Shown here in pieces: positions 33,889 through 56,000 of a stretch of 64,000 nucleotides of DNA. Origin of the DNA: Hyaloraphidium curvatum SAG 235-1. Lineage: Eukaryota > Fungi > Monoblepharomycota. The notes beneath the pieces were generated by a model. The model saw nothing but the letters and a program-made list of their open reading frames with translations. It had not been told where the DNA came from and did no database searches. Location of the stretch: positions 372,001-436,000 of the forward strand of contig JAIVFI010000022.1 of NCBI GenBank assembly GCA_025558095.1, read 5' to 3'. Within the stretch, counting starts at the first letter, position 1, and each line of letters opens with the position of its first letter. The position numbers were made by a program, and so were the translations under genes.

Positions 33889-34109
33889 TCTCTCATTGTA
33901 TGCTCATTCTGTTGCATTGGCCGAATTGATGCGAGTTGGCCTCTGTGCCTCTGGATTGCACCACCAACTTGCCAAGTCTCAGGTCATGGATGCTCTTGCC
34001 TGTAAAAGTGGAATCACTTAGTCTCTCATTGTATGCTCATTCTGTTGCATTGGCCGAATTGATGCGAGTTGGCCTCTGTGCCTCTGGATTGCACCACCAA
34101 CTTGCCAAG
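33844..34109. repeat. Perfect tandem duplication, 2 x 133 bp, covering the CDT1 stop codon and 3' UTR
   Basis: TCTCAGGTCATGG...CTTGCCAAG at 33844-33976 repeated at 33977-34109. Confidence 0.95.
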
Positions 34110-35520: not shown

Positions 35521-35665
35521 TGTTGTGACGGACGACTGGTCCGGCCTCTAGCCGGTGTGGACGGAAGGATGCGTGACCCCTGTGTGTGGTGAATTCCGTC
35601 GTGTTGTGATTGGAGTTGGGGCCGCTTCTCTAAGTTGCCGCCAGCCTAACAACCTCGTCACAACA
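35521..35665 (-). repeat. 3' LTR of Copia A
   Basis: TG...CA with 10-bp terminal inverted repeats; matches 44935-45079. Confidence 0.95.
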
Positions 35666-35751
35666 ATGAACTTTGCAATTAGCAGCAAACTCATGGTGTA
35701 ACAGCGGCCAAGCCAGGGGCAGGTCCGGGTCACCAATACTATTCTATCTAC
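35666..35751 (+). mobile_element. 86-bp 3'-end fragment of the same LINE family inserted at the Copia A LTR/PPT junction
   Basis: Matches the LINE 3' end at ~52793-52872; flanked by 7-bp TSD CACAACA (35659-35665 and 35752-35758). Confidence 0.9.
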
Positions 35752-35924
35752 CACAACACTCCCCCCTCGAAGCGGGACCAACTCCTCCCCCCAACCTCCT
35801 TAGAGGTTTGAGCACCAAGCACCAAGCAGCGTGGCAAACCCGACCAAATCCACTGCTGCTGTTGTCTTTGTCCAGAGCGCCGCGGTTTTGCATATCGGGC
35901 ACAACGCTCTGTGGTGCAGTCCGT

Positions 35925-38884
35925 TTATCCCCGTGCATGCTCCCCCTGCGGCAAGAACATGGTGGTATCCAGGACTCCCAGATCTGTTCGTGATGGAATG
36001 AAGCGCTCTTTCGGCTGAGCTTTTGTCATGATGTCCGCAAGTTGTTTTCCGGATTCAATGTCCTGAACCACGATTGTTCCAAGTTCCTGTTGTTGTCGAG
36101 TTAAATGGTACCGAATTGCAATGTGTTTGGTGCGCTCATGGTGAACAGGATTGTAAACCAAGTCCTGTGCCGAAGCATTGTCTTCGTGGATGATGGTGGG
36201 GCCTGGCATTGGAAACCCCAGTTCCGCAAAAAGGGTGCGCAAGTACATCACATCCCTTGTGGCTAATGCCAGGGCAATGTACTCTGCTTCGGTAGTGGAT
36301 TGAGCCACAAGGCTTTGGAGTTTTGACTTGAAGGAAAGCGGGGCTCCACATGCCATGACGACAACGCCTGTGGTGGATCTGGCAGTGTCCAGATCACCTG
36401 CAAAATCCGCATCTGCAAAAGCTTCCAGCACCAATGGTTTGTTGCCATCAAACACGAGTCCAAATGCCCGGGTTTGACTCAAGTAGCGCAGGATTCTCTT
36501 TAGAGCCGCAATGTGCTCCTTTCCATAGTTCTGCAGGTACCTGCTGAGGTAGATGACAGCATATATATGCCATGTCAGGCCTAGTGCAAAGAGCTAGGAA
36601 AAGCAAGGAGCCAATGCATCCAGAGTAGTTGAACGATGCCATGACGTGCGTCCGGATCTGCAATGTCTGGCTTCCTAAATCTCTCGGAAGGGAGCAATGG
36701 TGATGGAGCATCCTTCAAAGAAATGGGAGTGGCAAACTTCTGGTTCTTGTTGAGATCGCCGGCAGCAAATTGCACTGCTTGCGTGGTGTTGGTAATGTAC
36801 TTCTCCAGGATCCTCTCTGCAAAGACTGTTTGCCTCAAGATGATTCTTTTGTTGGGTCTGTCACGGATGACTTCCACACCGCCGTAGAGCTGCACTTCAC
36901 CGAGAAAGCGTGATTCATATCGGTTCTCAATCAATGCAATGCACTCTCTGACGAATTCTGGTGGATGTCCCGTGCCACACACATCGTCCATGGTCACAAG
37001 AAGGATTGCAATCTCTCCTGAGTCGCCCTTGATGCGTGTGTACATGTTGGGGTCCGTTTCGCAGTTGTGAAAGCCGTCCTCTTTCATGTTGCGCTTTAGC
37101 TCACGCTGATACAGGTTGGCTGCCTGTTTGAGGCCATAGACCCCCCGCTTGAGTTTGAGAACGGGGTCCTTGAGAGACAAGTCCCTCCTTTGGTAAGTCT
37201 CGTGCATCTCAACGTAGAGGTCCTCCTCTTCTGCATTGGAATTCAAGAACGCGTTCTTGATGTCAAAATGGTAAAGGGGCCAGTCCATGTGTGCAGCTAT
37301 GGCACACTGTGATCTGAAGGCTGCATGGGTATGGCTGCAAAAGTCTCCCCGTAGGTCCCAGGAGCCTGGCGGTTGCCATCAACCACGTGACGTGCCTTGA
37401 ACCGTTTGGTGAGGTCTGGGTTGAGTTTGAGGTCGAACACGTAGTGGGATTTGAGAATTCGGTCCTCCTTGCCACGGGGCCTTTCAACCTCTTCCCAGAC
37501 TTCTTTGTCATTGAAAGCTCCATCTTCCACTTGAATTGCCTCATTCCATTTTTCCCATTCTGGCAAAAGCTTTGCCTCCGCAATTGATCTTGGGATTCGA
37601 ACCCCATCAATCACGTGCATTGGCATTCCAAAACCTCCTTGGCTCCCAAAGTCCATGTGCACTGGTCCATGGATTCCTGCCATAATTGCAGCTTGCAGGT
37701 GTGGGGCTTTCCACCATTCCCGGGGAGGCTGCTGTGCCCGAGAGGAATGACGCACAGGGCGATGAAAATCGTGCTGTCCATTCTGCTCTTGCTGTTCTTG
37801 TTGCTCATGCTGTGGAAGATTTTGCAGGTCTTGCTGCTGATGAAGATCTAGTGGCTCTTGTTCCTCCTCCCCCTGAGGCACTAGATCATCCGTTTGGATG
37901 AGATCAAGTAGATCCAACGTTGAAAGAGGTGGCGTTGCCGTGCTGTCGACAGCTTCCTTGCCTGGTTTTGAGGAAGTGGGTGCAAGGAAAGGGATAGTGC
38001 GTGCGCTATAGCGCTCATTTGGCACTATGGTTCGGACCGCCATGACTTTTCCTGAATCAATCAAACGAACCATGTGCCCTTTTGTGTTTGGAGCTCTCCC
38101 CAAGTAGATTGCTCGCGCACCACGTGGTGCCAAGGTAGTGAGTTCTCTGTCTCGCACTTGGGCCCAGCATTCCATCCCGAATGTATAGAAGTCTTCGACT
38201 GTTGGAATTTCTCCATTCCACAAAGTCAGAGGAACGGCGTTCCTTTTCCATGATTTGGTGGTTGGCACGCAGTTGAGGACGTGCCCTGCATGGGTGGCGG
38301 CAAAAGACCGCCATTCCTCAGAGGGTCGCTGTTCCCCTAACAGCATTGCACGGATCATTTTCTCAATCTTTTGAACTCCCCGTTCAGCAACCGAATTCAT
38401 TTGGGGATGTCCTGGGATGATGAGTCTGAACTGAGCCCCAATCTTATGGAGGTGTTCCTGGAGTTCCTTCATGTTGGCTTCATTGTCCGCATGGAGGTTG
38501 CCAAGAACGTATCCATATTGATTCCTGGCGTGTTCGCTGAATCTGATGATTGTCGATGACATTTCAGAGCGAAGGGCCAAGTTGAAAGTGGCAAGAAACG
38601 GAGTGTCCTCGTCGAAAATGATGAGAAGATGACGCTTGCCATCTAGGGATCTAGGGAAATTCACGGCCATATCCGTATGTGCAACGTGTAATCGCCTTTT
38701 TGCCGTGCGAATCGGGTGAGGCGGGTATGGTTCTGAAACCATTTTTGCCCGTATGCATGAGTCGCAGTTCTCATGATCTCCTATGGCTCCCAGTTTAAAT
38801 TTGTCAAGACCTTGGATGAGGTTGTGTAGTTTCATGCGTCGGAGCGTGTCAAGTGACACATGGCCGAAGCGGGCATGGATGAGG
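35925..38884 (-). pseudogene. Copia A pol remnant (integrase-RT-RNase H) with frameshifts; protease part continues at 44465-44921
   Basis: HARFGH, MNSVAER, FDIKNAFLN, YGLKQA, TMDD, ADADFAGD, AQSTTEAEY, HERTKHI, QLADIMTK; frame breaks near 37300 and 36570. Confidence 0.9.
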
Positions 38885-39108
38885 TGTTGGAGTGGCTATG
38901 GGGCGTGGGGAAGACGTAGCCCCAGTGGTCTGAACCGGGTCAGAACTCAGATGGACGGGATGGGGAGAGGGACAGTTTCACGTTGACCCGTTGTCCATTC
39001 CCTTGCGATGACAAGTCCCTAGATGACCCCTCCGGTCGTACCCAAGTATCCCCACACGCCAATAGACTCCCTATTGATACAGAATCGTAGCAACGATCCA
39101 TTCCAACA
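38885..39108 (-). repeat. 3' LTR of Copia B
   Basis: TGTTGGA...TCCAACA, matches 44236-44459. Confidence 0.97.
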
Positions 39109-39156
39109 CTCCCCCTCGTTGTAAGATTCCCAAGAAGTGTCCAGAAATCCCCAAAG

Positions 39157-42100
39157 TTAGTCACGAATCTCTACAATTCCCATAAGTGCCCTGAAACGTT
39201 GAAACTTCTCCCTTGGTAGCTGTTTGGTGAGCAGATCCGCAAGCTGGTCCTCTGTGTTGATGTACTCCAGCTGTATCTCTCCACTATCAATTTTCTCCCT
39301 CACAAAATGGTACTGCACTCCAATGTGCTTGGTACGTTCGTGAAAGACAGGATTCTGCGCCAGCTTGATAGCCCCCTCATTGTCCTCCTTGATGACTGTT
39401 GGCCCTTGCTGAGGAAATCCCAATTCCTCCAATAAACTCCTTAGCCACGCAACTTGACGTCCAGCATAAGATAGAGCCATGTACTCGGCCTCTGTTGTAG
39501 AAAGAGCCACCACTGGTTGCAGTTGTGACTTGTAGATGATAAGGCCATTCCCCATCATCACAATAACCCCAGTAGTTGACCTCCCAGTGTCAAGGTCCCC
39601 AGCAAAACTAGCATCTGCATATCCGTGCAATGCTTTGGTCATGTCCAGATTCGGATCCCTCTTGTAGACCAAGCCAAAGTCAGCTGTTCCCTTCAAGTAT
39701 CTGGTTGTCTTCTTGACTTGCTCCACTGCTTCACGAGTAGGTGCCATCCCATGACGGCTCTCCGTGATAATAGGTAAGGCAATGTCCGGCCTGGTGAAGT
39801 TCATGGCATACATCCAGCTTCCCACCATTGATCTGAACGGAAAACGTCCGATTTCCTGCTCCTCAGCAGCAGACAACTCCGTCTTCCGTTTCCTGAGCTT
39901 CACCCCAACGTCCATAGGTACAGAAACTGCATTGCAAGTGTCCATTCCGAAGTCCTCCAAGGCTTTCTTGATGTAGTTGGACTGCTTGATTGTGATTGTT
40001 CCAGCCTTCTCGTCCTGCTTGATTTCCAAAGCCAGGAACTTTTTCATGCGACCCATGTAACGTATCTTAATCTGCTTTCCCAGCTCCTCAAGAAATGCAA
40101 TCGTCCGTTTTTCGTCCGTTGAGCTACATCCAAAGTCGTCCACATGAATAATCATCAAAAGAAACCAATCATCTTGCCGCAGAAAGTAGATGCAGTACTC
40201 CTTTGAGCAACGTATAAGCCCCATCTCCGTGAGTATCTCGTGCAGGTGTCTGTGCCAAGCACGTGCAGCTTGCACAAGTCCATAAACCGCGACTCCAGGT
40301 CGAATTACAGTAGGTCTTCCATCAGTAAACTCAGGTAAATCCATCCCTTGAGCTGGATACAAGTAAACTTCCTCGTTCTCCTGGAGCTTAGCCTGTAGAA
40401 ATGCAGCATTTGCATCAGCCTGATGTACGATCATGTTGTTCTGAGCAGATATCCAAAAGAAAAGCCGTACAGCAGCAGCAGAAGGTACAGGTGCAAAGGA
40501 TTGACCAAAAGAAGATGGATCCTGCCAATCACCCCTTGCCACCCATCGAGCCTTGTAGTTTTCCTCCCCCACAATGCTGCCATCAGCTCCAGGTTTGAGG
40601 TCAAATACAAATTGGCTTCCAACCGCGAATTTTTCCTTGCCCTCAGGCAATCCCATGATGTTGTACGCATCTCTGCTCTTGAAGTTGCCAATCTCACGTT
40701 CCATTGCCTTGGCCCACATCTCACGATCCTCTGAACGCATTGCCTCTGCATAGTTCCGTGGTACACGTGCTCCAGTGCTTGCAGCAAAGATTCCATCCAT
40801 GTGTGCCATGTCCTCCCAAGTTGGTAGGTGTCCCTGCCAGTCCAGGTGGTCCTGGACCTCCTCCATCAGGAAATTGATCGATTCCAGCGTGATCACGTTG
40901 ATCTCCTTCTCGTTGCTCGTGTTGGGGGCTTTCCACCACTCCCCAGGAGGTCTTGGAGCTCTGCTGGATGACCTTGTAGGTAAAGGTATCTTAGAACCCG
41001 TTCCAGCCGCCCCAGCGCCTCCCTGAGCTCCGCTGCTTGATGAAGATGCTCCTCCAGGCTCCCCACGTTGGTCTGTGGCTTCCCTAGCCGCACGATCACC
41101 AGAAAGTTGCGATCCACCAACTGCCTTTCCTCCCCCTGGATCGCCACTTCCACTGTTCCCAGAGCCTCTTCCACGAGCCACCAGCTCGTCCTCACTTTCG
41201 CTCTGAGCTCGTTGATCGCGTGACAGACGTAAATCCGTTCCCTGGCTGCCAGAACTTGAAGATTGATGTTGAGTACCTCCAACTTCCAGTCTTTGACCTC
41301 CTCCCCCGGCCTCCTGGCGCTCAGGTTGACGCTGCACACGGTCTCCCTGTGTCCCACGATGCTCCTGGTTGCCGTCGTCGATAGGATCTGCGGAACGGAC
41401 CCGCCGTGGCGTCTCCGGTGACGCCTCCAATTCCTCAGGCTGCGCCGACTCCTCCACTGCAAGTCGACGGTTCAATACAGCGCTCGGGTCCGCGTCCTCA
41501 GGTAGTTTTTCGACCGAAACTCCGCTTTCCAGAACCCGCATGTAGCTCTTGAGCGTCTTGTTTGACCAGCGTTCCTCGAAAACGACATCACGTGAGTCAA
41601 AAATCCGCCCGGTCTCAAGATTCTGGACCGTAAATGCCTTCGATCGCGAGCTCATTCCCAGGTAGCGGCATTGTACCGCCTTAGCATCCCATTTGCCGCG
41701 CTTATCCTTGTCGACGATCGCGTAACACGTTTCTCCGAAACGTCGGATGTGGCTAATGTTCGCCCGTCTCCCAGTCAGCAGTTGAAACGGCGTAGACCCT
41801 TTCTGCCACGTCTTTGTGTTCGGCAAACGATTCCGTGTGTTGATGTGATGATGCAGTGCGTATCCCCATAACGACTTCGGCGCTTTCGAGTCGATCAGGA
41901 TGGTCCGGATCCCTTCCTCGGCGGTCCGGTTCCGCCGCTCAATTACCCCATTCTGCGCAGGCCGATTCGCCACCGACGATTCCAACTTGATTCCCTCGTT
42001 CTTGCAGTACGCTTCGAGCCGTTTTGACGAGAATTCACCTCCGGGATCGACCCGCATGCATCCGACCTTTAGGCTGAACTGGTTCTTCACCCACTCGGCA

Positions 42101-44061
42101 AAGTGCATCATCCAGTCCTCCGCCTCCGATTTGTGCTTCAATAGGAACGCAAACTCCGCAGAAGTGTACTCGTCGACTGCATGCAATGCCCAGCGTTCTC
42201 CATGCACCGTTGCAACGTCCGATTGTATCAGGTCCCAGTGAGTCAGCTCAAACGGCCGCGAGACTTTCCGCTCCGACTCCGGATAGGGCAACTGATGCAT
42301 CTTCCCCATCACGCACTCCTTACAGAAGTTGTTGAGGTTTCCAGCAAACACGTACTCCTCCAATCCATCCACAATCCCAGCCTGTTGAACCTTCCTGAGT
42401 GCCGCGATCGGGTAGTGCCCGCAGCGCCCATGCGCAATCTCCGCGCTCAAATCCCCTTCCTGAGCACTCAGCATGATCTGTTCGTCATGCTCGTTGAGGA
42501 TTTCCGCGTTGAGATAGTAAACGTGACGATCTATGCGGCAAGTGCCCCGCACGTCGCCGCCCTTGGTGATGGCCCCTCCATCCGGACCCAGAAGCGTGTA
42601 GTATCCCATCTGCCCTAGTCTCCCAATCGAAATGAGCGTTGCAGGAAGATCTTTGATGAAAAGCACATCTTCCAGGGTGACGATGTCGCCAGAATTGGTG
42701 AGCTTGATCTTGAGCTTTCCGACTTCGATCGCACGCGCGATCCCTTTTCCCATTCGAACATCAACTGCATCGCACGGCTTGATGCCGTAGAGCAGTTCCC
42801 TGATTCCCGTCGCGTGCACGGACGCGCCGCTATCCCCCATCAGCCTGCCGCGCATCTCCTGGCCCGTCTTCGCCGCGTGCACGACGTGTTCCGGGGGTTT
42901 TTCGTATCCACCGTCCCCCGTCGTCTCCCCATCGTTTCCCTCGATTCCGCCCTCCATCATGAACAGGAACGCGCCGAATCGATCTTCCAGATCGGGGAGA
43001 TCGCCCAGGGTGAGCGTGTTCTGCTGCTCTCGTGCCGTTTTCCCATCGTCCTTCCTCCAGCACACGGCCTCGAGATGACCGTCCTTTCCGCACTTGTTGC
43101 AGGTTTTGTCACGATGGGTGCAGTCCTTCTTGACGTGTCCACCCTTCCCGCAGCAGAGGCACGTGATTCCCGAGCCGTTTTCGCCCTCCGCCGTGGCCTG
43201 CCGACCCCCGCGATTTCCGAATCCTCGCCCGCGACCCCTTGAACCCCCGCGGTCACCTCCATGGCCACCCCGTGATCCTCCGCGACCCCTGCCACGGTTT
43301 AGAGCGTACATCAACGTGTTTGGAGCGGGATTCACGGTTATGTTGGCTGCCCCAGGTGAGTACGTATCACCATTTTGCTCAGCTCGCTTGATCATAGTCT
43401 CCTCTTCCATCTCCATCCTCTTCTGAAGGTATGCAACGTTCAAGATAGGGTGTTTCTTCACTCCATTTTCAGTCTTCCACTCGTGTTTGGTCTGTGCTCC
43501 CAGCCAAATGCCGTCAATCTCGGCCCGGACTTGATCGAACTCAGGTAGGTCCTTCAGGACTTTCCTCCAGATGCTCATATCATCGTCATCTCCCTTCAGC
43601 TTTCCCAGTGCTTCAACTTCCATCTTTTTCTGCATGAAGCGGGTAAAATTCGGAGCCACCCGGTCGGTAATGATGAACTCAAAGCTGTAGTACTGGACCT
43701 CGGCGTTCCCTTGCTGCGCCACATTTTCCGTCACGAAACGCTTCTCTAGGTAGTCCCAGATGTCCTTAGCAGTGTCCATCCTGCTGCAGATCCTTTTGAG
43801 ACCAATAGAGAGTGATCCTACCAGGATCCCTTGAGCTTTCTGGTCCTTCGTGTTCCAGGCTGACAAATCATCTTCCGTCTTTCCTCCCTGCCCTACCACG
43901 GGCTTTGCCACCTTTCCAGTCACAATTTGCCAGTCACTCTCCCTCTGGAGCTTGGCCTTGATGTCAATTAACCAATCCTGGTAATTGGTTTGTGATCCGG
44001 TTTCCTCGAGCTTGGCCCCCCCAAACAATGCCACACGGGTTCCTCCGACCGAAATCTCCAT
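39157..44061 (-). CDS. Copia B Gag-Pol polyprotein (1634 aa, uninterrupted)
   Basis: Gag with two CCHC knuckles (CLCCGKGGHVKKDC, CNKCGKDGHLEAVC), protease DSGAS, AHGRCGH, integrase (DPGGEF, QNGVIERRNRT), RT (HVDD), RNase H (YADAS, EDN, QLADLLTK), in Copia domain order. Confidence 0.97.
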   Translation of the reverse strand: MEISVGGTRVALFGGAKLEETGSQTNYQDWLIDIKAKLQRESDWQIVTGKVAKPVVGQGGKTEDDLSAWNTKDQKAQGILVGSLSIGLKRICSRMDTAKDIWDYLEKRFVTENVAQQGNAEVQYYSFEFIITDRVAPNFTRFMQKKMEVEALGKLKGDDDDMSIWRKVLKDLPEFDQVRAEIDGIWLGAQTKHEWKTENGVKKHPILNVAYLQKRMEMEEETMIKRAEQNGDTYSPGAANITVNPAPNTLMYALNRGRGRGGSRGGHGGDRGGSRGRGRGFGNRGGRQATAEGENGSGITCLCCGKGGHVKKDCTHRDKTCNKCGKDGHLEAVCWRKDDGKTAREQQNTLTLGDLPDLEDRFGAFLFMMEGGIEGNDGETTGDGGYEKPPEHVVHAAKTGQEMRGRLMGDSGASVHATGIRELLYGIKPCDAVDVRMGKGIARAIEVGKLKIKLTNSGDIVTLEDVLFIKDLPATLISIGRLGQMGYYTLLGPDGGAITKGGDVRGTCRIDRHVYYLNAEILNEHDEQIMLSAQEGDLSAEIAHGRCGHYPIAALRKVQQAGIVDGLEEYVFAGNLNNFCKECVMGKMHQLPYPESERKVSRPFELTHWDLIQSDVATVHGERWALHAVDEYTSAEFAFLLKHKSEAEDWMMHFAEWVKNQFSLKVGCMRVDPGGEFSSKRLEAYCKNEGIKLESSVANRPAQNGVIERRNRTAEEGIRTILIDSKAPKSLWGYALHHHINTRNRLPNTKTWQKGSTPFQLLTGRRANISHIRRFGETCYAIVDKDKRGKWDAKAVQCRYLGMSSRSKAFTVQNLETGRIFDSRDVVFEERWSNKTLKSYMRVLESGVSVEKLPEDADPSAVLNRRLAVEESAQPEELEASPETPRRVRSADPIDDGNQEHRGTQGDRVQRQPERQEAGGGGQRLEVGGTQHQSSSSGSQGTDLRLSRDQRAQSESEDELVARGRGSGNSGSGDPGGGKAVGGSQLSGDRAAREATDQRGEPGGASSSSSGAQGGAGAAGTGSKIPLPTRSSSRAPRPPGEWWKAPNTSNEKEINVITLESINFLMEEVQDHLDWQGHLPTWEDMAHMDGIFAASTGARVPRNYAEAMRSEDREMWAKAMEREIGNFKSRDAYNIMGLPEGKEKFAVGSQFVFDLKPGADGSIVGEENYKARWVARGDWQDPSSFGQSFAPVPSAAAVRLFFWISAQNNMIVHQADANAAFLQAKLQENEEVYLYPAQGMDLPEFTDGRPTVIRPGVAVYGLVQAARAWHRHLHEILTEMGLIRCSKEYCIYFLRQDDWFLLMIIHVDDFGCSSTDEKRTIAFLEELGKQIKIRYMGRMKKFLALEIKQDEKAGTITIKQSNYIKKALEDFGMDTCNAVSVPMDVGVKLRKRKTELSAAEEQEIGRFPFRSMVGSWMYAMNFTRPDIALPIITESRHGMAPTREAVEQVKKTTRYLKGTADFGLVYKRDPNLDMTKALHGYADASFAGDLDTGRSTTGVIVMMGNGLIIYKSQLQPVVALSTTEAEYMALSYAGRQVAWLRSLLEELGFPQQGPTVIKEDNEGAIKLAQNPVFHERTKHIGVQYHFVREKIDSGEIQLEYINTEDQLADLLTKQLPREKFQRFRALMGIVEIRD

Positions 44062-44235
44062 CCCGGCCGCCGCAGCACCTCTAGTGCTTCACGCGCTCTT
44101 TCTAGCGCCCACTGAGTCCACCCAGGCGGTCCTGGAGACCAGACTCAGCTGGATGCGGTCCCCTCGGCTGGTTGCGCCACACGCAACTTCAAAGCCGCGC
44201 AAAAGTGTTCTGGACACCCTTTGGGCTCATAGACC

Positions 44236-44459
44236 TGTTGGAGTGGCTATGGGGCGTGGGGAAGACGTAGCCCCAGTGGTCTGAACCGGGTCAGAACTCA
44301 GATGGACGGGATGGGGAGAGGGACAGTTTCACGTTGACCCGTTGTCCATTCCCTTGCGATGACAAGTCCCTAGATGACCCCTCCGGTCGTACCCAAGTAT
44401 CCCCACACGCCAATAGACTCCCTATTGATACAGAATCGTAGCAACGATCCATTCCAACA
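44236..44459 (-). repeat. 5' LTR of Copia B
   Basis: Followed on the minus strand by PBS GGTCTATGAGCCC. Confidence 0.97.
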
Positions 44460-44934
44460 TGAGGCGCCGTTGATCCTTATCAGTTGCTTGAAGGACCATC
44501 ACCTGTCTGCCATGAGAAGTGTCTCGGACCGTGTTGCTGTTGCCCTGCAGCACGTCTGCATTCAGGATGTAGACGTTGTTCACCACCTGTGCCTTGGCAC
44601 GTGGTTCATTTCCAAATGTCAGGGTTGCAAAGAGTGGTTCATCAGAGGGATCTGTCAGGTTTTGAGGAGGTTTGGCACTGAACTCAAAACCTTTGCGTGC
44701 GTTGGAAATGTGCAAGTGACAGGAGTCGGCAAGCACTGAGGGGCATGAACAGTACGTTTGATACCAGGCATTTCCTCTTCGTATCATTGAAGTGAATCAT
44801 GATTGTCCCCGCGTAGTTGGCTAATAATTTCCCTTGGACTTGGGTGATTTGAACTGGAGGACAAAGAGGCCACATCTCCATAAAATCAGACAGGTCTGGA
44901 GACGAGTTGAATGATGCACATGGGCTCATAACCC

Positions 44935-45079
44935 TGTTGTGACGGACGACTGGTCCGGCCTCTAGCCGGTGTGGACGGAAGGATGCGTGACCCCTGTGTG
45001 TGGGGAATTCCGTAGTGTTGTGATTGAAGTTGGGGCCGCTTCTCTAAGTTGCCGCCAGCCTAACAACCTCGTCACAACA
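44935..45079 (-). repeat. 5' LTR of Copia A
   Basis: Followed on the minus strand by PBS GGTTATGAGCCC. Confidence 0.95.
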
Positions 45080-45838
45080 GTCTGCAAAGAACAGAGCCAG
45101 CAAGCTAGTGGACCATCCTCTCCTGATCCTCTTCCTCCTCAGACACCATGCCCAGATCCATCCCTTTTGCACCATTGGCCTCCATGAAAGCAGTGATGTC
45201 GTTGATGAACAAGATGAAGAACAGTGATGAGAGTGGGTCCCCTTGCTTCACTGCAGTTAGGAACTTGATGAAGTCCGACTTGGTGCCGTCCTCATCCCGG
45301 AGCCTTCCCCACACCCGCCCGAACGCCATCTCAAACATGTCAACAACCTGTTTGGGTACTCCCATCTCCTCCAGCTTCTGCCATAACCTGGGGCGCTCCA
45401 CCGTGTCAAAAGCCTTTTATTTTGCCTCCCTGCCATGCATGTGGTCATTGCTCTCACCGGGTTCTAGCACGGGTTGACGTGAGCTGGTAACTGGTCGGAT
45501 GAAAAGACATGGAGACACCAGTGGTGGACAGTGGCGTGGTGGATGAAGTGGCATGGGCTCCGTTGCATTGCGGAACTATATACAGTATAAATGGGTAAAG
45601 GTCACCATAAGGTCACCTCGAGAATCACCTGGGTCCGCCCGCCAAACCGCGGGGGCCGAAGTGACATTCCAAAGCTCCGAAACAAACCGTTGCCGTTCCC
45701 TCCCCAGGCCCGAACGGCCAGTGCCGCTTGGCACTGACGCTTAGAGAGGACCATAGATCCCCTCCCGGCCCTCGGTCGGGCACGGACTGTTCTGAGCGGC
45801 GAGCTTTTGGGACTCGGAGCCGGACACTTGACAGGACG

Positions 45839-48800
45839 ATGTCGGACAGCCGCACACCGGCTTCCGGGCCCGGATCCCGCCCCGCGGCGAAGGCGCGGGC
45901 TCCGAAGAGTGCGCCCCAGGGAACGCCGGGGGCTGGAGAGGGACGGAGGAGGCCGCGGGCATCGCGGGGTGGTGCGCGGACGCCCACATCGCAGGACGGC
46001 AACACCGGCTCGGGGACGTTGGAGCTGCCCGCGCCGACCCTGCCCGCGCGACGGAAGACCAAGACGAAGGCAGAGACCGGCACTCGGGCCAAGGCGGCGG
46101 TAAGTTTGTGCCGGAAGCCCGTCACGGGAACTCGACGCTGACCTGTTCTTGGCCCTCGGCCACGTGCAGGTCGTCTCCCCTACGGCGCCGTCTGGAAGTG
46201 CTTCGGAAGCTCCAAATCCGAAACGAAGGAAGACGGCAGACGGGGCAGCTCTGCCTGTTGCCGGACAGCCCTCCCCGCTTCGGCCTTCGACGGCAGCACC
46301 TTCCACCTCCCTCAACGACCCCAACGCGCCCGCTACCTCAGCCGGAGACCCTCCTGGGGACGAATCCGAGATTATTCTCCCCCCTGCCGGCCTGCAACTT
46401 GTTCTAGGCGGGCTTCGCTTGCAGATTCAGAACGCCGTACCTATCCCGTCGGAACTCTCGCGCCGGGCCCTCGAACAGCTCGATAGGCTGCGGCAGGACC
46501 AAACGACGACCACGAGCTCTCTTTACCGGCCGCAGATGACTGAGTACCTGCAGTTTTGCAAGACGGAGAAGCTCCCGGCATGGCCTATTCGGGGGGACAC
46601 AGTGGCCCTCTTCGTGGAGTACCTGTCACGGAGGCCGAAGAAGACGAGCGGCAAGAAGCGATCGAGGGACGAGATGGAGGAGACCGAGGAGGAGCGGGAA
46701 CGCCGGGAACAGCAGGCCAACGAGGAGCAGGAGCTCGGTCTTGGCAATCAGCACGGCGGACAACCGCTTTCCGAACAGCCGTTCGCGACCAAGACCGAGA
46801 CCCCGGGCGTGAGCACCGTGATTTTGGCCATCACTGCGCTCGAGTGGTTCCGCCTGCGGACGCAGGACTACTTTCCGCAGACCACTTACCCCGAGGCGCA
46901 CGTCAAGCTCCGGGATTGCTACGCTGTGAAGGAGCTGGAGAAGCTGCTTAAGGTGCTCGAAGTGGACAAGAAGAACTCCATCGACAGAATCAAAGCGCCG
47001 GGCGTTTTATCTGATACCTACTCGGACTCTGAGTTTCTGGCCGTCGCACAGTACCATCTGACAAGGGGCCGGATCTACCGCAACAAGAGGGTGCGCATGA
47101 CACCATTTCAGGAGATCCTGAACCTGCGTGCACGCACACTCCACCTCATCAACGGACTTGTCGGGTTCCGCTCCAGCAACGGGCGGGCGATCGAATTCTC
47201 GGACCTCTTTGTGAAAGTCGTCCAGCTCGGTCACGGAGAAGACCCGGTGACAGCCAAGGTAATGTACGGCTTGCCTCGCCGCACGAGAAAGCTGACGTTC
47301 CTTCCCCGCTTCCGGCACAGGCGTACTGCATCCTCGCGGACAACGGCAAAACGAATCGGCACGGCGGGGTCGACATTTTCGGCATGCTCCGCAACTACGA
47401 CGTGCGCCTGTGCGCCGTCGCCAGCCTCGCCATGCAAATGTACGCGCTAGATCGACTGCAAGACTTCCAGTGGCCAGATTGCGCCCCGGTCTTCGATTCC
47501 CTCACGACCAAGGTCGGTCGCCGCCCGTGGGTGAGGCTCAAGGTCTTTCCCCGAGCCAGCAACCCCTACGAGGAAATGTCCTACAACAGTGAACCGTGCT
47601 TTGCTCGGTCGAGGTGAAGATTTGGCGCCTGATGAATCCTTCGACGCAGCGCACTACCAGCAGGTCAAGAACGCGCACGACGACTTGGCCATCGGCATCA
47701 CCAAGGCCACGCACGCATGCAGGCAATACTCGGCCACAACATCCGTAGCGCGCGGCGCCAACAAAGCGGATGTCAAGGACCAGCATGGCTGGGACAAGAG
47801 CATGCTCAACCTCTACGACACCGGCTCGCTCCCCCTCACGCACCTTGTCGCTGTCGCCGGCGGGAACCCTCACAATTTGGCGTCCTATTTTCTTCCTCGC
47901 GCCGAGCTCGGTGGGTACCTTCGGCCAGCGCATGGAGCTGCTGGATGCTGACTGTCCTCTGATGCAGTGCCCCCGGCATCTCTTGTGGCCGAGACCTTCC
48001 AATTCGCAACGCGGGAGCTCGCGAACTACGCGAGCCGACTGCAGCAGGACCAGAGCAAGTTCCTCGACCCAACGTGCAAGGGCTTCCACGAGCTTGCGCG
48101 GGACTTGGCCACGGCGAGCATGCCCATCTCGAGACGCACACTTGCGCATGTACTTACTTCGGTCCCCCGCCAGGTCTTCTTCCAAGACGCGCCAAGCATG
48201 ATCGATCTCTTGTCTGGAGGGCGTTTCGGCAATGCCGAGGTGCCGAGGGAGCTCTGGTACGCGGGACTCCCGCTGATCTACCAGACGGAGCACTTCAAGT
48301 CGGAGGTCTACATCCACTATCACAACCAGGCGCTTGCGCAGCTCGAGGCCATCAAGGTCTCCCGCGCCAACACGCTCGCGCCCAAAGACTACGTCGACGC
48401 CATGGTCCCGCGGTTCCAGCAGCTGCAGTCGCAGCACGCGCAGCTGGAGAACCACGTCGTCACCGAGATCTCGGGCGTAAAGGAGCTCGTCAACGAGCGG
48501 TTCGACGAGATCAAGGAGCTCTTCCTCTCGCAGCGTGGTGAGCTGCCGTCGTCGGCCCGCCCGGTGAACGCCCGCTCGGTGAACCCGTCGGCGATCGTGG
48601 AGAACCCGACCCCCTCGGCGCCAGAGCGGAGGGCGAAGCCGCGGCTGCGTCATCGTCTGCGGCTGCGGCTGCAGCCGCCGCTGAAGCAGCCGCCGCGCAG
48701 AGGCGCCGCGAAGCCGAGGATCGCGCACGGAGGGAGAAGGAGGAGGCGGAGAAGCGAGTGGCGAAGGCCGAGCTCCTGCAGGAGCACGGTGCTCGCCTCG

Positions 48801-49201
48801 GGGCCCTGGAGCTCGTCTAGTACGAGCAGGGTCGGCGCTGGGTGCCCGCGTACCCCTTCCCTTGGGTCGTTAACCCGCGGGACATCTGGGACGAGTACAC
48901 GATCGGGGCCAAGCCGGATCCCGGGCGCCCTCGCCTGATCTCCATCCGGGAGCTCAACACCATCTTTGGCGGATCATGGACCCGCAACATTCCGACACTG
49001 AAGCAGCAGAAGAAGCGGAGGAAGCTGGTGTGCGACGAGGTGCAGCGCCTCCAGAAGGTGAACCATTGGTCCGAGGAACAGGCTCTCCAAAGCCTGTGCA
49101 ATTGCTTCCATCGCAATGGGAAGTGGACGGCAATTACCAACGTGTACAAAATCTTGACCGAGGAGCGCAAGGCACGCGGAGAAGCTGAAGCAGCGGAGTA
49201 G
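45839..49201 (+). CDS. CryptonF-type tyrosine recombinase (Ndc10 domain II-like) with C-terminal GCR1_C-like domain; in-frame TAG at 48818 before the last domain
   Basis: Introns 46100-46169, 47259-47320, 47589-47649, 47911-47967 and probably 48538-48602. Catalytic set GFRSSN (R), NGKTNRHG (K), KATHACR (HxxR), HGW (W), MLNLY (Y); LRNYDVRLCAVASLA; C-terminal DIWDEYTIG...SIRELNTIFGGSW...KRRKLV. Confidence 0.85.
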
Positions 49202-49613
49202 GGGAGCTGGCATGGTGCGGCGGACGGCTTCGGGCGGGATTCTTGGCCACGGCCTCTTGACAATCTTAAAGATCGTTGATGTATTCTTCGTTTTGCAATC
49301 TTCGTTGGTCCCTCAATGTCGAAGCTTGGTCTGGGGAAGCCGAAAACGTCCTTTTCGTAGTCGTTTTGTCGCGCCTTAGCGATCAACCCTTTGGTTGCTC
49401 GGGTGACAGTTACACAAACTCGGCCAATTCTCTCACTCGCGACCTCGTGACGGCCAGCTAGAGGCCTTAACGCGGCTCTCCTGAGCCGTCGCCATCGCCT
49501 CGTGGGGCACTGGGACCGTGGGACTCTCCGCGGGGCAGCTGCCGGCGGAAAAGTCACGTCGGGACCACTCCGCTCCGAGCACGAATCACTTGCCATTGGA
49601 GGGGCTGCCGGTC

Positions 49614-50692
49614 ATGGCCGCCCGGGAAAAGCCGGCGCTGAAGGCAGTTGAAGAGGCGCTGGAGTCCTTGGTGGCCCTCGCAAATCCTCGGCCGAGGGAT
49701 GGGCGCTGGATTGCATACGTGCGCAAGTCGAAGGACGACAATGCGAACAACATCTCGCTGCAGGACCAGGAGGGACTGGTGCGGCGCTGGGCGGCGGACA
49801 ACAAGAGGGAGATAGTCGCTGTCTGTAGCGACGTCCTCAGCGGCACCTACCCGCGTGGTGACGGGAGGAAGCAGCGGCCCGGACTTGAGGAAGCATTCGG
49901 GAGGCTCTCTCGCGACGCAACGATCGTGGGCCTGGCCGTTGCCCGCGTGGATAGGCTCGGCAGGAACGCTGCTTTCATCCTGGCGGACGTGGAGGAGCTG
50001 AATCGCATGGGCAAGAACTTTGCCAGCGTCGAGTTTCAAGGACTTGTGCACGGGCCCTTGAATCCAACTTCCAACATGGCGTACATGTTTCTCGTACTAG
50101 GGGCCCTAACGGCGCACACTGAGCGCTCCTCTGTGAGTGCTCCGCGGGGCGACAGCAGCGTCAGCGCAGTCTCTGACCTCGCAGGCACCCACCTCTGCCT
50201 CGCAAGATTGCTGCGCGCACCGCCGACTCGGCGAAGCAGAGATCAACGCGCAACATCGGTCAGTCCAGGTTCTCACCCTTCGGGACCCGCTTCCGAGCTC
50301 GGTTCCCTGGAGGAGAGGTTCGCGAGGCGGTGGAGTCGGGTGAGCTCGCTGGCCGGGAGTACCACGGAACGAAGCGCGCACCGCTCGAGCTTGTGATCCA
50401 CGAGCCCGAGGCCGAGCAAGCTGCGATTCTTGCGCCTTACCTGACCAAGCTTGACGGGGAGCAAGACCCTCAGGAAGTGCGTCATGGGTCGTCGCCGGCA
50501 TTCTTGCTCGGTGTCCTACGGGAGCGAGGAAAGGACGTGGATCATCGCGCCAAAGGGGTTCAGCGAGGGTACCTGGATGCCTCCTCGCTTGCTCGCAATG
50601 TTGCAAAGGCCGTCAAGTACCTGACTGAGCGGGAGGGGAAGGAGAGGTTCGCGGAGCGCGTGCTGGCGGCGTGGAAGGGGCCGGGCATGTAG
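49614..50692 (+). CDS. Serine recombinase (resolvase/large serine recombinase-like), ~334 aa, one spliceosomal intron
   Basis: IAYVRKS (nucleophile Ser at 49728-49730), SLQDQ, DVLSG, RPGL, ARVDRLGRN. Removing intron 50133-50206 (GTGAGT...AAG, phase 0) restores ERSS|IAARTA...SPFG...LVIHEPEAE. Confidence 0.88.
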
Positions 50693-51579
50693 GAAGCGTC
50701 CAACGGAACGCAATTCGTTCTATTCTCCATCTTCAAATACCCATATCCCGGCCCTGTAACCCCGGCAGCCGCGTTCTGGCAGATGCAAAGAAGCTGATAC
50801 GCGCCCGTGCGGGTTCCCCCGTACGCAACAGGGTTGCGGCCTGTAGGACCTCTGGCAAACAAGAGGGCAATGCTTCTTTTGATTGCCGAACTTTCTCAAC
50901 GGTCCAATCTTGGCTTGTCGGAGGTAACGGCCAGGGGTGAGGGAGCAACGCGTCCGAAACAACGAAAGTGCCCCAGCTGTCGCCAGGAACCTCGGAGCCG
51001 CGATCCTTCTAGCCAACGGCATTGGCCAGCACCATGAAGGTCTGCTACCCCTGATTCCCTGGCCAGTCCTCCCCCAGCGGAGAGCGTGGGGGCCGACATC
51101 CAGCGCCGCGGCGGGGACCGGCAGCGAACCCCGTACAGCGGCCTCCAAGGGCGGATCCAGCCGCGCAATCCTAGAGAATATGTTCCTCGAGAGATGCTTG
51201 CGGCGCCGCCTGCCTCCAAATAGGCATGCGAAGCCGAGGAAGTGCCTCGGACTCGCCGCCACCGCGAAGGTCCACGGCCCGGCTCCACAAACAGCTCCAG
51301 GAAACAATGGGCCCGGCATCCCCGTAGAAAACAGCGTAGCCAAAGTTGCCGCCGAGCCAGCCGAGCTCGGCGAGGGGCATTCCACGAGGAACACCGCAGG
51401 GCCCCTCGAGGCCCGGGGTGCCGCTCACACACAAGGTCCCCGGCCGAGCGCGTCCGCCGCGCCCACCGGCACGTGCGGCGGTACTTGTTGCGACGCTGCG
51501 CGGGCCGGCGCGCGGCCGGGCGGAGAGTGGGACGCGCACGGGGTCGCCGACCTTGTCGGCCTATGAGGTGAACTGCCGC

Positions 51580-51655
51580 GTGACTTTTCGGAGCTATACG
51601 GTATAGCTCCAGAAAGTCACCTCTGCCAGCCGGCAGTATAGTTTTGAAAAGTCAC
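51580..51655. other. 41-bp palindrome plus an extra half-site, candidate recombination site
   Basis: GTGACTTTTCGGAGCTATAC-G-GTATAGCTCCAGAAAGTCAC (51580-51620, 18 of 20 arm positions pair); third half-site GTATAGTTTTGAAAAGTCAC at 51636-51655. Confidence 0.75.
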
Positions 51656-51746
51656 CCGTATTTTTGATAGCCGGGTTAGGCGCGCGCGCGGGGTGACCTG
51701 GGTGATCTAACGTGACATTTAAAACACACATATGTATGGGCAACAG

Positions 51747-52961
51747 GGTCGGCAGCTTCAAGCTTCTGGGGTACCAGCTCACGTCAACTGGGCGGAGCAA
51801 GGACCATGTGCATGGCAGGGAGTATAAGATGAACGCTGCTTATGGGCTCTGGCTCCGCGACATCAGGGAGCAGCCTGGGATGAGTCCTGACCTCCAGCTC
51901 AAGCTCTACAGCACAAAGGTCAAGGCAGTGGGCCAATATGGGAACCCGTTCATTGTTGAGATGCCGAAGGAGGAGTACCTTGCCGGGGAAAGCACCAGGG
52001 ACAAAGTGACATGCATGGCTCTTCGTGCCGTCACTCATCTGCCCAAGTCTACCTCCCTGGCCTGTCTGTATGCGATCACTGGCCAGTACCCCCTTGCAGT
52101 TCATGACCACGAGTCGGCACTCAAGTTCCTCATGCGCATCAAAACAGCGGATCCTGCACTGTGCCTACTTTACAAAGAGCTCAAGATCGAGGCACTGAAG
52201 GGGTCCTGGAACTGGGCTGCCTTCCTGAGGGAACTACTTGTATACTATGGCGGCGAAGATGGGAGGGAGCTGTGGGAGAAGGACACTTTCTCATGGCCCA
52301 AGGAGACTGTGGAGACTCTTGTGAAGGGCAAGTTCAGGGAGATCAATGCCCAGAGGCTCAAGGACAACGACAAACTGCACTTTTGGAGGATGTGTGACAT
52401 GATCTTGATCCGGGTGGAGAAGCACCGGAGGGATGTCCAAAAGTTGCTGTGCTCTACCCACGACCTGGAGGTGGAGACAGGCAGGCACCAAGGACTTGAG
52501 GTGCAGCAGAGAACGTGCAAGCATGACCCTGAGCACATTGGAGACGAACAACACTTTCTGTTTCACTGTTCAGCAAATGCGGAGCGGCGCCAGAAGCTGC
52601 AGACTAGATTGGAAGCACTAGGCCGCGAGTGGAACATGGAGACCTGGCTCTGGGCTCTTAGCATCAAGGAGTTCGAGCCCACGATCAAAGCAAGGCGGCA
52701 GAAGGAGAAGGCCCTCAACTCCATTGCCAGCTTCATCTCAAAGTCCATGAAGGACAGGAAAACTGGGAAAATGAAAAAGACACAAGACGACGATGAACTT
52801 TGCAATTAGCAGCAAACTCATGGTGTAACAGCGGCCAAGCCAGGGGCAGGTCCGGGTCACCAATACTATTCTTGAGGTCCGGGTCACCAATACTACTATT
52901 CTTGTAACAGCGGCCAAGCCAGGGGCAGGTCCGTCCGGGTCACCAATACTATTCTACTATT
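51747..52961 (+). mobile_element. 5'-truncated LINE, copy 2 of the same family, with a reiterated 3' end
   Basis: RVGSFKLLG (RT thumb) to HDLEVETGR...GDEQHFLFHC, stop 52809; near-identical to copy 1; possible TSD CAACAG at 51741-51746 and 52962-52967. Confidence 0.9.
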
Positions 52962-53009
52962 CAACAGCTTGACAGAGGAGGTATCCAAGGAATCATCAAC
53001 AGCACAGGA

Positions 53010-56000
53010 TCATCCTGCAGTGGCTTTAGCAACTGCCTCCTGTAGCTGCTTTGCTTGGTTGGAATCCAACGATGCTGTTAGTGCCTGAAACAGTTGCTGA
53101 TCCCTGTTTGAGAGATCTAGAGTGCCATCAGCGAACGTAACAGTAAGCAAGGATTTAGAACCCTCACCTAGGATCACGGTCGAGAAGACGTGGTAGGGAT
53201 CGACAGTATCCAACGGCGTCTCAAAGTAAACATCCTCCTCAAGTTCAGCATCATCCCAATCATAGTCATCAGCGTCTCCATCCTCCTCTGCTTGCTCCTC
53301 CTGTTTAGGCGGAAGACGAGGGAATCAGCAAGAGCAAAACACGACAGCGACCCCAACCACCTTGGAAGCCAGAAAATCAAGATACTCGTCTCCTTCATCC
53401 GCCACATCATCGTCTGAAAGGAACGGCATCAGTCACGGAATAGCCAAAATCAGGAGCAACCATACCGGATCCGGCGTCCACTTCCTCAACCTCATCCTCG
53501 TCATCTTCAGGCTCACTTTCAACCTCCCCATCTTCCTCGTCAGCATCCGATCCCTCCTCGTGGAGCTTCTTCAGGTGCTCACGCGCTACAGAACGGGTTA
53601 TCTCACGCGGAAGGGATCGCCAATACGGCCGTGTCTAACCTTCAACGGCGGCTGGCCACGTCTCGAAAAGCTTGGCAAAGGCGACGCCAAGTTGCGACCA
53701 TCCAGCCTTCAACACTGCTGGGATCTGCTCGACCGGACACGACAAGATGGCACAGAGTCCCAGTATGCAGAGGCGCTTGTCATGGACACTGTGTCAAGAA
53801 ATGAGCTTCCAAGTACTGGACATGCCCACGCCGAACCACCCACCGAACAAACTTGTCCAGGTTCTGGAGCCAAAGTGTGAAGAATGCTCCGGTCTGGCCT
53901 TGCTGCTCCAGCAAGTGTAGGGCAAGCGATGGGTTGTACAGCAGGCAGTTCACAACGACCTCGAGCAGGTGTACGAGGTAAGCATCCGACTTCGGCTCCC
54001 CATCGTTGAGGTAATTGCCGGCATAAGCAAGGAAGGTCTCAATCACCTGACCACGATGTGGTCAGTTCTGCGGGTAGGCCATCCTCATGGTCTCGTGCTC
54101 ACGTCATCGAGGTGCTGCTTTCCATGCAGCATCAGCGACTCCATAAGCTGGCAACCGCAGATGCGGTCTCCATCCGACAAGTGCTCCTCCGTCATAATCT
54201 AGGAGAGGAATCAGCAAAGACCAGGGAATCGTCGAGTGCACATCCCGCACCACATTGATAATCTCGAGCATCATTTTACGCAGTTCATGAGAGCCGAACA
54301 GGGTAGTGCTTCCGTGGGCGATAATGTTGTCGAGTACCGGGAGCACCTCTGGGAAGCGAGTGAGATTCCTTCCCATAGGCCACCCGCATAAGCCCACCTT
54401 CGATGTAATCGATTGAACTGTCTCGGATTGCCTGGAAAATGAGTTCGAATACTTGCCAAACGCCTTGGCTAACTGTTTTGGTGCAATGCGTGAGAGTGTC
54501 CACAATCTCGAAAGCATCATCGAAGTGATCTGGGTTCCACGGTCAGTCACTGCAGGTCCAAGTTGCATTCTCGAGGCATCAAGTACGAACCAACGAGCCG
54601 CTGCGATAGGATGTGGCTGACGAGAGGAACCACAACATGCTCGATCCGCGCAAGCACCTACGGAGGAAGAACGTTAGGAATGAACACCAGCAAAGGGTCC
54701 AAATGCCCACATCCTTGGAACTCTCTACGGAAACAATGAGGGTGGATATCGTCTTGAGGACACCCATAGCTGCCATGGTCTTCTCGTTGGCTTCGCTAAA
54801 GGCGTCATCGTCGTCGTTTTCGTCCAGGGCACGCGTGTCGGCCATGATGCGAAGGAACGTATCTCTCTGCCGGGGACGGGGTCAGATCGGAATGGGCAGC
54901 CAGACGCCTGAACGCACCAGCGACGTGCATAGTTCAACAGCAAACGGGGTAAGCTGTTCCGAGAACAGCTCGACCAGAGATTCCATCACCGAAATCAGCG
55001 TATCCATGTCGATTTCGTTCGTCAGCTTCAAGAGCTCTGTGCTGCCCGTCAGCGCGGTCCTCTTCTGGATTCGATTGCGGCAACATACCGTTCATGACGA
55101 GGGCGGCGTCGGGCGCCATAGCTGTTTGCACTGCAGGACACATGGCTAGTCTGCAGGTCATGCACGAAAGAGTGGTGGAAGCACGACTCACCGTCCTCGT
55201 GCTGAAGAAGCTGGGGCAGCGTCAAAGCTGCCGCCACCCGAACTGGGAGGTTCGCATCCTTGAGGCAACCAATGATGCCACGGTAAACGGCCATCACACC
55301 CTAGGAGTCGATGCGGATCAGGGCAATTAACAAAAGCAACAGTGCGAACGTCAGACCTCCCGGTTCTCAAACTCGTAGTCCCCGAGCTTCACAAAGATCT
55401 CACAGGCCTTGATGCACCAGGCGATTGTAGTTAGAGCACTGGTATCACAAACTGGTGACAAGACATACCCTCGATCTGAGGAAGGCGTGCGGGCTCTGGA
55501 GCTCCGGCAGCACGTGGTTGAAGGCAAACTCTTCGATGCTAAACTGCTGCTTCAATTCCTGCAGATGCGACGTCAGCAACTTGCCATGTCACGCAGGGGA
55601 CGAACGTACCTCATCCGCGAGGACGACATCCAAGACCGTTCCAACCATGTTCAGGGCCCCGTCCTTCCGACGAGCCATTTCTTCCGTCGGAGTTTGTGCG
55701 TAGCTGCGACTAGCACGTCAGATTCACTTCCCCCCACATCGCGCCGGACGTTACCTCTGAAGCACACCAGAAACAACCTCGAACATCTGCGCCAGCGTCG
55801 ACTTCCGATCGCGCACTAGCGTGACTAGCAAATTGGCAGCTGCATGTTCTGGGCTCTTGAAGTCCTCCATAGGATCTGCGAAGGCATAAGGATCGAAGAT
55901 ACGGAAGCGAGCCAAAAACCAACCAAGTTTCTTCCTGACAAACTCCACCGGGTTATCCTCCCAGAGCTCGGCATCCTCGCTGGAAAAGCAGAGCATCGGG

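Follow-up and report, generated by a model that had tools for sequence, protein, structure and literature searches.

The 64-kb stretch of the Hyaloraphidium curvatum genome analysed here (the window) raises the question why a Crypton-type mobile element should encode, besides its tyrosine recombinase (YR), also a serine recombinase (SR). The unit in question spans positions 45578-51733 and contains two co-oriented, intron-containing genes. An earlier note on this DNA had described them as recombinase genes lying between shared motif arrays, and this description is borne out by Pfam matches, intron models and the density of the arrays. The best explanation of the arrangement is that a CryptonF-type transposon has captured a module composed of a serine resolvase and its resolution (res) site. 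On balance, sequence comparison favours an accessory role for SR, which would act on a predicted site and thereby resolve cointegrates or multimeric circles. All genome-wide comparisons refer to the 31.9-Mb assembly of this fungus, to which contigs C2, C4, C9, C10 and so forth belong, and spliced gene models were queried exon by exon or as deposited NCBI proteins.

Crypton termini and the linkage of both genes

Each end of the element is formed by one copy of the direct repeat ATAT (4 bp; 45578-45581 on the left, 51730-51733 on the right). At the left terminus (45578-45670, plus strand), which was delimited by its end and by motif density, the repeat is accompanied by a subterminal array of GTCAC, ATCAC and GTGAC motifs. 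The right terminus (51693-51733, plus strand) comprises a GTGAC array, an ACACAC end and the second repeat. Five right ends of this family in the genome all stop at ACACAC and two left ends (the second on contig C10) both begin with ACAG, in each case with unrelated flanks. A 2-bp AT core is common to the ends of the family, with GT in one copy, and loose ends at 51729 and 51733 in public contigs agree with the right terminus. The terminal GTCAC/GTGAC arrays reach about 29-30 motifs per kb compared to 1.6 per kb across the whole window, and the densest 170-bp stretch of this motif in the 64 kb is the right end of the element. No terminal inverted repeat (TIR) was found in the element, and no empty site for it in the genome, where the 160 bp adjoining the left end are unique. 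A YR of the R-H-R-Y type, a GCR1_C domain and short direct repeats without TIR or target-site duplication (TSD) are CryptonF features that the element shows.

To which of the two enzymes these ends belong can be judged from a second Crypton family of the same genome. Crypton-B is 5.4 kb long, lacks SR and occurs in near-identical copies (C21:157470-172800, C49:8500-18500, C22:613000-617500 and C2:568463-573846; loci L038-L044), and its head-to-tail trimer and dimer arrays display its end junction. The predicted end junction of the window element agrees with this junction at 14 of 21 positions in register, the best score in that locus, and both families possess their own family-specific terminal arrays of 5-6-bp motifs. 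In addition, a subterminal palindrome (51580-51656) with a CTATAC-G-GTATAG core, 20-bp arms and a third half-site is present in the window element. Its core is found once each in the window element, in the SR-less Crypton-B and in the metagenomic contig L059, always 105-145 bp inside the right end, and on this distribution we regard it as a Crypton feature that is not specific for SR. Because junction likeness, motif arrays and subterminal palindrome are shared with Crypton-B, SR is located inside Crypton termini, and because this genome also contains Cryptons that have homologous ends but no SR, SR is accessory. SR as owner of the termini was rejected, since the ends match those of the SR-less family. 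Head-to-tail junctions are present in Crypton-B and possibly once in L059; none was seen for the window family. The C21 and C49 arrays of Crypton-B have a common right flank; they may represent one locus assembled twice or duplicated, and the arrays probably stem from one event.

The linkage of YR and SR is not restricted to the window, as comparison of two further sequences indicates. The YR 3' end, the spacer and SR are contiguous also in a copy on contig C2 (87-93% identity). In L059 the SR is 40-44% identical to that of the window with an intron at the same codon. Before this SR, and pointing the same way, lies the end of a frame that resembles GCR1_C (34% over 65 aa, pairwise E 5e-7) and for which Pfam alone makes no call. 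Downstream of this SR follow the same subterminal palindrome core and then a possible, weakly supported right-end/left-end junction. Thus, the search for other copies that keep both genes together, as proposed in the earlier note, yielded both a diverged genomic copy and a metagenomic element. The same note had reckoned with an independent nested insertion if other Crypton copies lacked SR and SR had separate termini of its own; SR-less Cryptons do exist, yet SR lies within Crypton ends and its linkage recurs.

The YR gene (45839-49201, plus strand) was modelled by hand with six exons (45839-46099, 46170-47258, 47321-47588, 47650-47910, 47968-48113 and 48174-49201) and five introns of 57-70 nt, four of them GT-AG and one GC-AG. 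The model is supported by Pfam and by homology to the YR of Crypton-B, which it matches exon by exon; a homolog search with the exon 2 region gave no match. All catalytic motifs (R, K, HxxR, HGW and Y; 47163-47816) are intact, with R-H-R-Y at 47163, 47712, 47784 and 47808, and H-x-x-R as well as Y align with Crypton-B. Both domains expected by the earlier note were recovered, albeit with unequal clarity. GCR1_C (48878-49096, plus strand; PF12550, 39 bits, E 8e-10) is above the cut-off, and NDC10_II is weak and confined to one exon in the window YR (E 0.06) but above the cut-off in the homologous Crypton-B.

Compared to the C2 copy, 10 bp are missing from the window YR near 48625 and a TAG interrupts it at 48819-48821; due to these lesions its C-terminal part is broken and the GCR1_C DNA-binding domain has lost its frame. 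In C2, in turn, the catalytic core is absent, and no intact YR of the window family was found in the assembly. The SR frame is intact in one of four window-family copies, namely that of the window. Between copies the ratio of nonsynonymous to synonymous substitutions (dN/dS) is 0.15-0.23 for SR (p < 0.001) and 0.33 for YR. SR copies evolve under purifying selection, and as dN/dS is below 1 in both genes, SR and YR worked while the family spread. The family is now decaying and not pristine. The claim of a little-decayed, young copy was not confirmed: besides the damaged YR, CpG richness is no signal of youth because the observed/expected ratio (o/e) of the element, 1.05, equals the genomic background, and the window copy is not demonstrably young.

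The serine recombinase family and its candidate res site

The SR gene (49614-50692, plus strand) comprises 334 codons in two exons (49614-50132 and 50207-50692), as supported by Pfam, fold searches and the splice joint. Its 74-nt intron (50133-50206) agrees with the NCBI gene model and its position is conserved in three divergent SRs. The GT-AG joint of 50132 to 50207 is present in an RNA-like run and missing from two DNA runs; since the contig with the spliced joint bears the letters of sister copies, splicing was seen in these. A potentially competing out-of-frame CAG acceptor (50182-50184) is private to the window copy. In a 2025 run from another study (X4), contigs are about 96% identical to the region of exon 2 (window 50222-50725) and therefore indicate close kin of the window SR family in another sample.

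The catalytic domain is a Resolvase domain (PF00239, E 1e-14), a structure search matches the fold with serine recombinases, and the motifs Y-x-R-x-S and DR-x-x-R are invariant across the SR family. Ahead of the catalytic strand there are some 30 variable residues and no N-terminal helix-turn-helix (HTH). Family members have 290-370 aa (about 334 in the window SR, which is devoid of zinc ribbon and coiled coil). The C-terminal domain was modelled with a predicted local distance difference test score (pLDDT) of 87. In a structure search its top six matches were all large serine recombinases (LSRs) at modest Z scores of 4.2-5.3, and a comparison with PDB sequences and Foldseek gave no match. Of the two Pfam families named in the earlier note, Resolvase was confirmed and Recombinase (PF07508) was not matched; the modelled domain nevertheless resembles the DNA-binding domain of LSRs.

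Relatives of SR were obtained by a profile search over 1.8 billion representative proteins, in which they formed a distinct top group. Named members derive from Chytridium, Obelidium, Rhizoclosmatium, Phlyctochytrium, Quaeritorhiza, Chytriomyces and the aphelid Amoeboaphelidium. In a quick tree the family is one group (support of 93 in the approximate likelihood ratio test SH-aLRT), within which the window SR, SR-B and L059 stand together (90); as the rows of this tree were picked by the same profile, this support is not independent. SR-B is a second Hyaloraphidium family with four intact copies (C4:373085, C9:539598, C34:542991 and C46:168839; L031-L034) that are 98-100% alike along a stretch of 3.4 kb or more. 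Queries with Crypton, integrase, DUF6729, KDZ and a DDE alignment revealed no partner gene for SR-B, blanks that prove nothing. Metagenome and GTDB pattern scans gave no confirmed relative, and a viral scan gave distant generic SRs and nothing closer.

Outside Hyaloraphidium the partner is mostly a different one. In eight of the longer loci, four of them linked by profile search and four by motif order alone, SR adjoins or is model-fused to a gene that combines clustered cysteines with the motifs D-x-TFK, D-x-x-H and GT-x-x-x-E-x-x-H in this order, as is typical of Mutator-like DDE enzymes. One of these partners matches DUF6729 above the cut-off, and one locus has an IS630/Tc1-like gene on the other side of SR. 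TIRs around these loci are at most weak single-copy candidates and none is claimed. As the family adjoins unrelated transposase types, SR is not tied to one chemistry of ends. From this distribution the usual host of SR seems to be a DDE transposon, from which setting a Crypton would have captured the module. The earlier proposal of an undescribed element class that combines a Crypton with SR therefore stands as far as the arrangement is concerned (Crypton ends, second organism), but SR is not specific for Cryptons, being found mostly beside DDE genes. In the Chytridium lagenaria locus L051 (3640-19283) the unit of DDE gene and SR recurs in tandem about every 8.5 kb up to the end of the contig.

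Rhizophydiales contain a further set of relatives (P0016, P0018-P0020, P0022-P0030, P0038 and P0118 from Batrachochytrium, Homolaphlyctis, Boothiomyces, Gorgonomyces and Polyrhizophydium). These conserved proteins of 430-1150 aa have one or mostly two copies of the SR C-terminal domain, no catalytic domain and no Pfam name. They look like a domesticated DNA-binding protein of this order.

Upstream of each SR a range of up to 750 bp was scanned for palindromes with a free 2-bp centre. The sequence CAAGGG-NN-CCCTTG precedes SR in SR-B, in two Chytridium loci and in two metagenomic loci, with fixed arms and the centres AG, AT, GT, GA and TT. A variable centre between fixed arms is typical of serine crossover sites. 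The match is exact in L032, L050, L051, L052 and L054, has one mismatch in L059 and the window and two in L057 and L064. Of 12 element types tested, 9 thus have the palindrome just upstream of SR, with a single copy in each element. When 64 loci were scanned with the pattern, ten matched and all ten were SR loci; for three loci found after the pattern had been set, the chance of an exact match is 4e-6 to 3e-5 per locus. Across the whole genome the pattern is matched 7 times versus 3 for a control, and four of the 7 represent one per SR-B copy (14/14).

The Crypton-borne variant reads CAACCS-NN-KGGTTG and matches the window once (0.05 expected in 64 kb), at CAACCC-TT-TGGTTG (49384-49397). This single-copy candidate crossover site is located between the YR and SR genes, and an internal cluster of the terminal GTGAC/GTCAC motif (49403-49557; 3 motifs in 186 bp) lies between it and the SR start. 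The C2 copy and L059 have an identical 14-mer site, and an intact site that continues into element sequence left and right is present in the window, in C2 and in L059. It was not found in the examined parts of Crypton-B. The subterminal CTATAC/GTATAG palindrome was rejected as res site because it occurs in the SR-less Crypton-B too.

Several further observations concern this site. Compared to L017:7731-7744 the inner bases of the window site differ at four adjacent positions, and the window site equals the inverted C2 core with two C-to-T changes; subfamilies may thus differ in their crossover specificity. On contig C9 (336632-341290; L019, L020) two right halves are joined head to head and form a palindrome of 4.66 kb, in which both SR genes are broken. 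Its outer ends are both right termini with unrelated flanks, so that it may have moved as one unit. It starts 5 bp to the right of the site centre, which would fit a break at the site followed by fold-back; as its arms are 96.5% alike and patchy, this is only suggestive. A contig from a viral collection (L061:5577-5590) has a site with two mismatches about 420 bp upstream of a distant bacterial-type SR, perhaps by chance.

The proposed role of SR and competing explanations

According to the established Crypton model, YR would recognise the terminal motif arrays and excise and integrate the element at its short direct-repeat ends. SR would bind the single palindrome ahead of its own gene and recombine two such sites whenever two element copies share one molecule in direct orientation. 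Its substrates would be cointegrates or translocations that arise when transposition adds copies, or else dimeric circles and tandem arrays, which are converted to monomers. As the central 2 bp are mostly asymmetric and differ from family to family, one would expect deletions more often than inversions, and less cross-talk. Both the cleavage of this site by SR and resolution as the outcome are deduced from sequence. An active CryptonF in Chlamydomonas is excised cleanly, yet its copy number rises, and it gives rise to reciprocal translocations in which each of the breakpoints bears an insertion (PMC9977147). Such translocations are the type of product a resolvase undoes and were therefore counted for a resolvase, as were the tandem arrays of the SR-less Crypton-B. 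It has yet to be explained how the copy number of Cryptons rises (PMC9977147), and a resolvase within a Crypton would make a pathway via cointegrates or multimers directly testable. The Tn3-like division of labour suggested in the earlier note thus agrees with the single candidate res site between the genes; it is so far a reading of sequence, with SR as the accessory enzyme.

A number of observations speak against resolution. The C-terminal domain of SR resembles that of integrases (Z 4.2-5.3) and not the HTH of resolvases, and Crypton-B thrives without SR. The SR-bearing L059 may hold an unresolved head-to-tail junction (13/21, weak), and no cointegrate was observed in the genome and loci compared. 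Upstream of SR in L056, L058 and L065, the last being a blind test, the site was not found, and its pattern had been set after seeing two loci. Accessory subsites like res II/III of Tn3 were sought by conservation and none was found.

The most serious competitor, though an improbable one, regards the SR cassette as a self-mobile hitchhiker that enters other transposons via the palindromic site and from which the host element gains nothing, comparable to the promiscuity of Fanzor or the logic of res-hunters. The occurrence of SR with a Crypton, with Mutator-like DDE genes and near an IS630/Tc1-like gene fits this, as do its integrase-like C-terminal domain and the lack of a partner gene for the four SR-B copies with the queries used; purifying selection is compatible with it too. 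Such a cassette would, however, leave hybrid half-sites at both of its borders, whereas one intact palindrome per element is seen. Moreover, the distance between SR and its partner stays short, though orientation varies, and the Crypton linkage has persisted through about 60% protein divergence (L059).

Less credible still is a function of SR as second integrase, which would insert excised circles into chromosomal look-alike sites and give circularly permuted copies, or as the true transposase acting at a 2-bp AT core like IS607. All left and right ends have a common 2-bp AT or GT core, the right end of L059 may be joined to a left-end-like sequence and gene start, and one domain is LSR-like. 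Against this stand the match of the ends with Crypton-B, which has no SR, the absence of an N-terminal HTH, TnpB/Fanzor, zinc ribbon and coiled coil, and a site that is intact and surrounded by element sequence in the window as well as in C2 and L059.

We give little credence to the palindrome being an operator, with SR as mainly a DNA-binding regulator of the element, or to SR being an invertase. The site does lie in the promoter region of SR, and Rhizophydiales have conserved host genes for two-domain derivatives that lack the catalytic domain, but the catalytic Ser and Arg are invariant in the family, the variable central 2 bp within fixed arms fit a crossover, and no segment can be inverted when each element has a single site. 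An origin from bacterial contamination, from mis-assembly or from a nested insertion that occurred by chance at one locus, for which only the failure of any single public contig to span the whole unit could be quoted, is hardly tenable and the earlier doubt on this point can be set aside, given the spliced intron at the same position in three divergent SRs, the recurrence of the YR-SR junction on C2 (87-93%) and in L059, and named relatives that are fungal or aphelid with none in the GTDB pattern scan.

Returning to SR as accessory resolvase, a broader picture can be drawn. We incline slightly to the view that early-diverging fungi and aphelids harbour a hitherto undescribed, eukaryote-resident serine resolvase with its site as a portable module that resolves cointegrates or multimers across unrelated superfamilies of DNA transposons, namely Crypton and Mutator-like DDE elements. 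This would imply bacterial-style replicative transposition in eukaryotes, with the DNA-binding domain later domesticated in Rhizophydiales.

Surroundings of the element and comparison with known systems

The element is flanked by pieces of one long interspersed nuclear element (LINE) family. The left flank (45080-45577, minus strand) is a rearranged reverse-transcriptase fragment with a weak RVT_1 match that was aligned to other LINE copies; the right flank (51745-52809, plus strand) is the 3' part of the same family in opposite orientation, so that the pieces point away from each other. The left piece contains a diverged duplicate of the start of the right one and a template jump, and resembles a 5'-inverted LINE. 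Further upstream (38885-44459, minus strand) a Ty1/copia retrotransposon with an intact open reading frame (ORF) of 1634 aa and a 224-bp long terminal repeat match of 100% identity is a recent insertion. CpG o/e falls to 0.44-0.65 in retroelement stretches (33000-42000, 44400-45578 and 51738-54000) and is not depleted in genes and the Crypton, hinting at methylation-driven decay confined to some repeats.

CryptonF elements of fungi, oomycetes and Chlamydomonas (Kojima and Jurka 2011, PMC3212892) likewise possess YR and GCR1_C in one protein and short terminal direct repeats without TIRs. Some known CryptonF elements carry a C48 peptidase or Fanzor as additional gene, or are fused with Mariner (MarCry-1_FO), and the window element differs from them by SR and its internal site. 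In the literature searched there was neither a Crypton with a serine recombinase nor a chytrid resolvase family, though an unpublished Repbase entry is possible, and no description of a module of resolvase and site in eukaryotes.

The Tn3 family has the layout tnpA-res-tnpR. A transposase gene, a single palindromic candidate site by the recombinase promoter and a serine recombinase gene are found here, too. In contrast with Tn3 the window system is eukaryotic and spliced, the partner is YR (here) or a Mutator-like DDE enzyme, and there is no TIR with 5-bp TSD; instead of the HTH of Tn3 resolvase, SR has an LSR-like C-terminal domain, and a three-subsite res was not found. By its domain structure SR is no Tn3 resolvase but, judging from the arrangement of genes and site, it likely works like one. 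Like the LSRs (Bxb1, phiC31, A118) SR has a catalytic domain, and the domain behind it bears a modest structural resemblance to their recombinase domain; at about 330 aa it lacks the zinc ribbon and coiled coil that set the directionality of att sites. A eukaryote-adapted serine recombinase of 330 residues with a short site is a candidate tool for genome engineering.

IS607 and IS607EU (Fanzor2) also bring a serine recombinase into a eukaryotic mobile element. Here, however, SR has no N-terminal HTH and does not define the ends, which are AT and not GG, and inside the window element there is no TnpB/Fanzor ORF and no room for one. IS607EU was described in a 2026 review as the only known eukaryotic DNA transposon that codes for a serine recombinase with which to transpose (PMC13565253). 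The SR family is a second, unrelated eukaryotic serine-recombinase lineage that has introns, ranges widely over chytrids and aphelids and possesses a predicted core site of 14 bp. The host genes with two domains found in Rhizophydiales would represent a new case of domestication.

Finally, Tec1 and Tec2 of Euplotes are eukaryotic transposons with a second site-specific recombinase that is thought to resolve intermediates (PMC3212892). They combine a DDE transposase with a tyrosine recombinase, and the window element a tyrosine with a serine recombinase. By analogy, Tec elements are the nearest logical precedent for the arrangement presented here.

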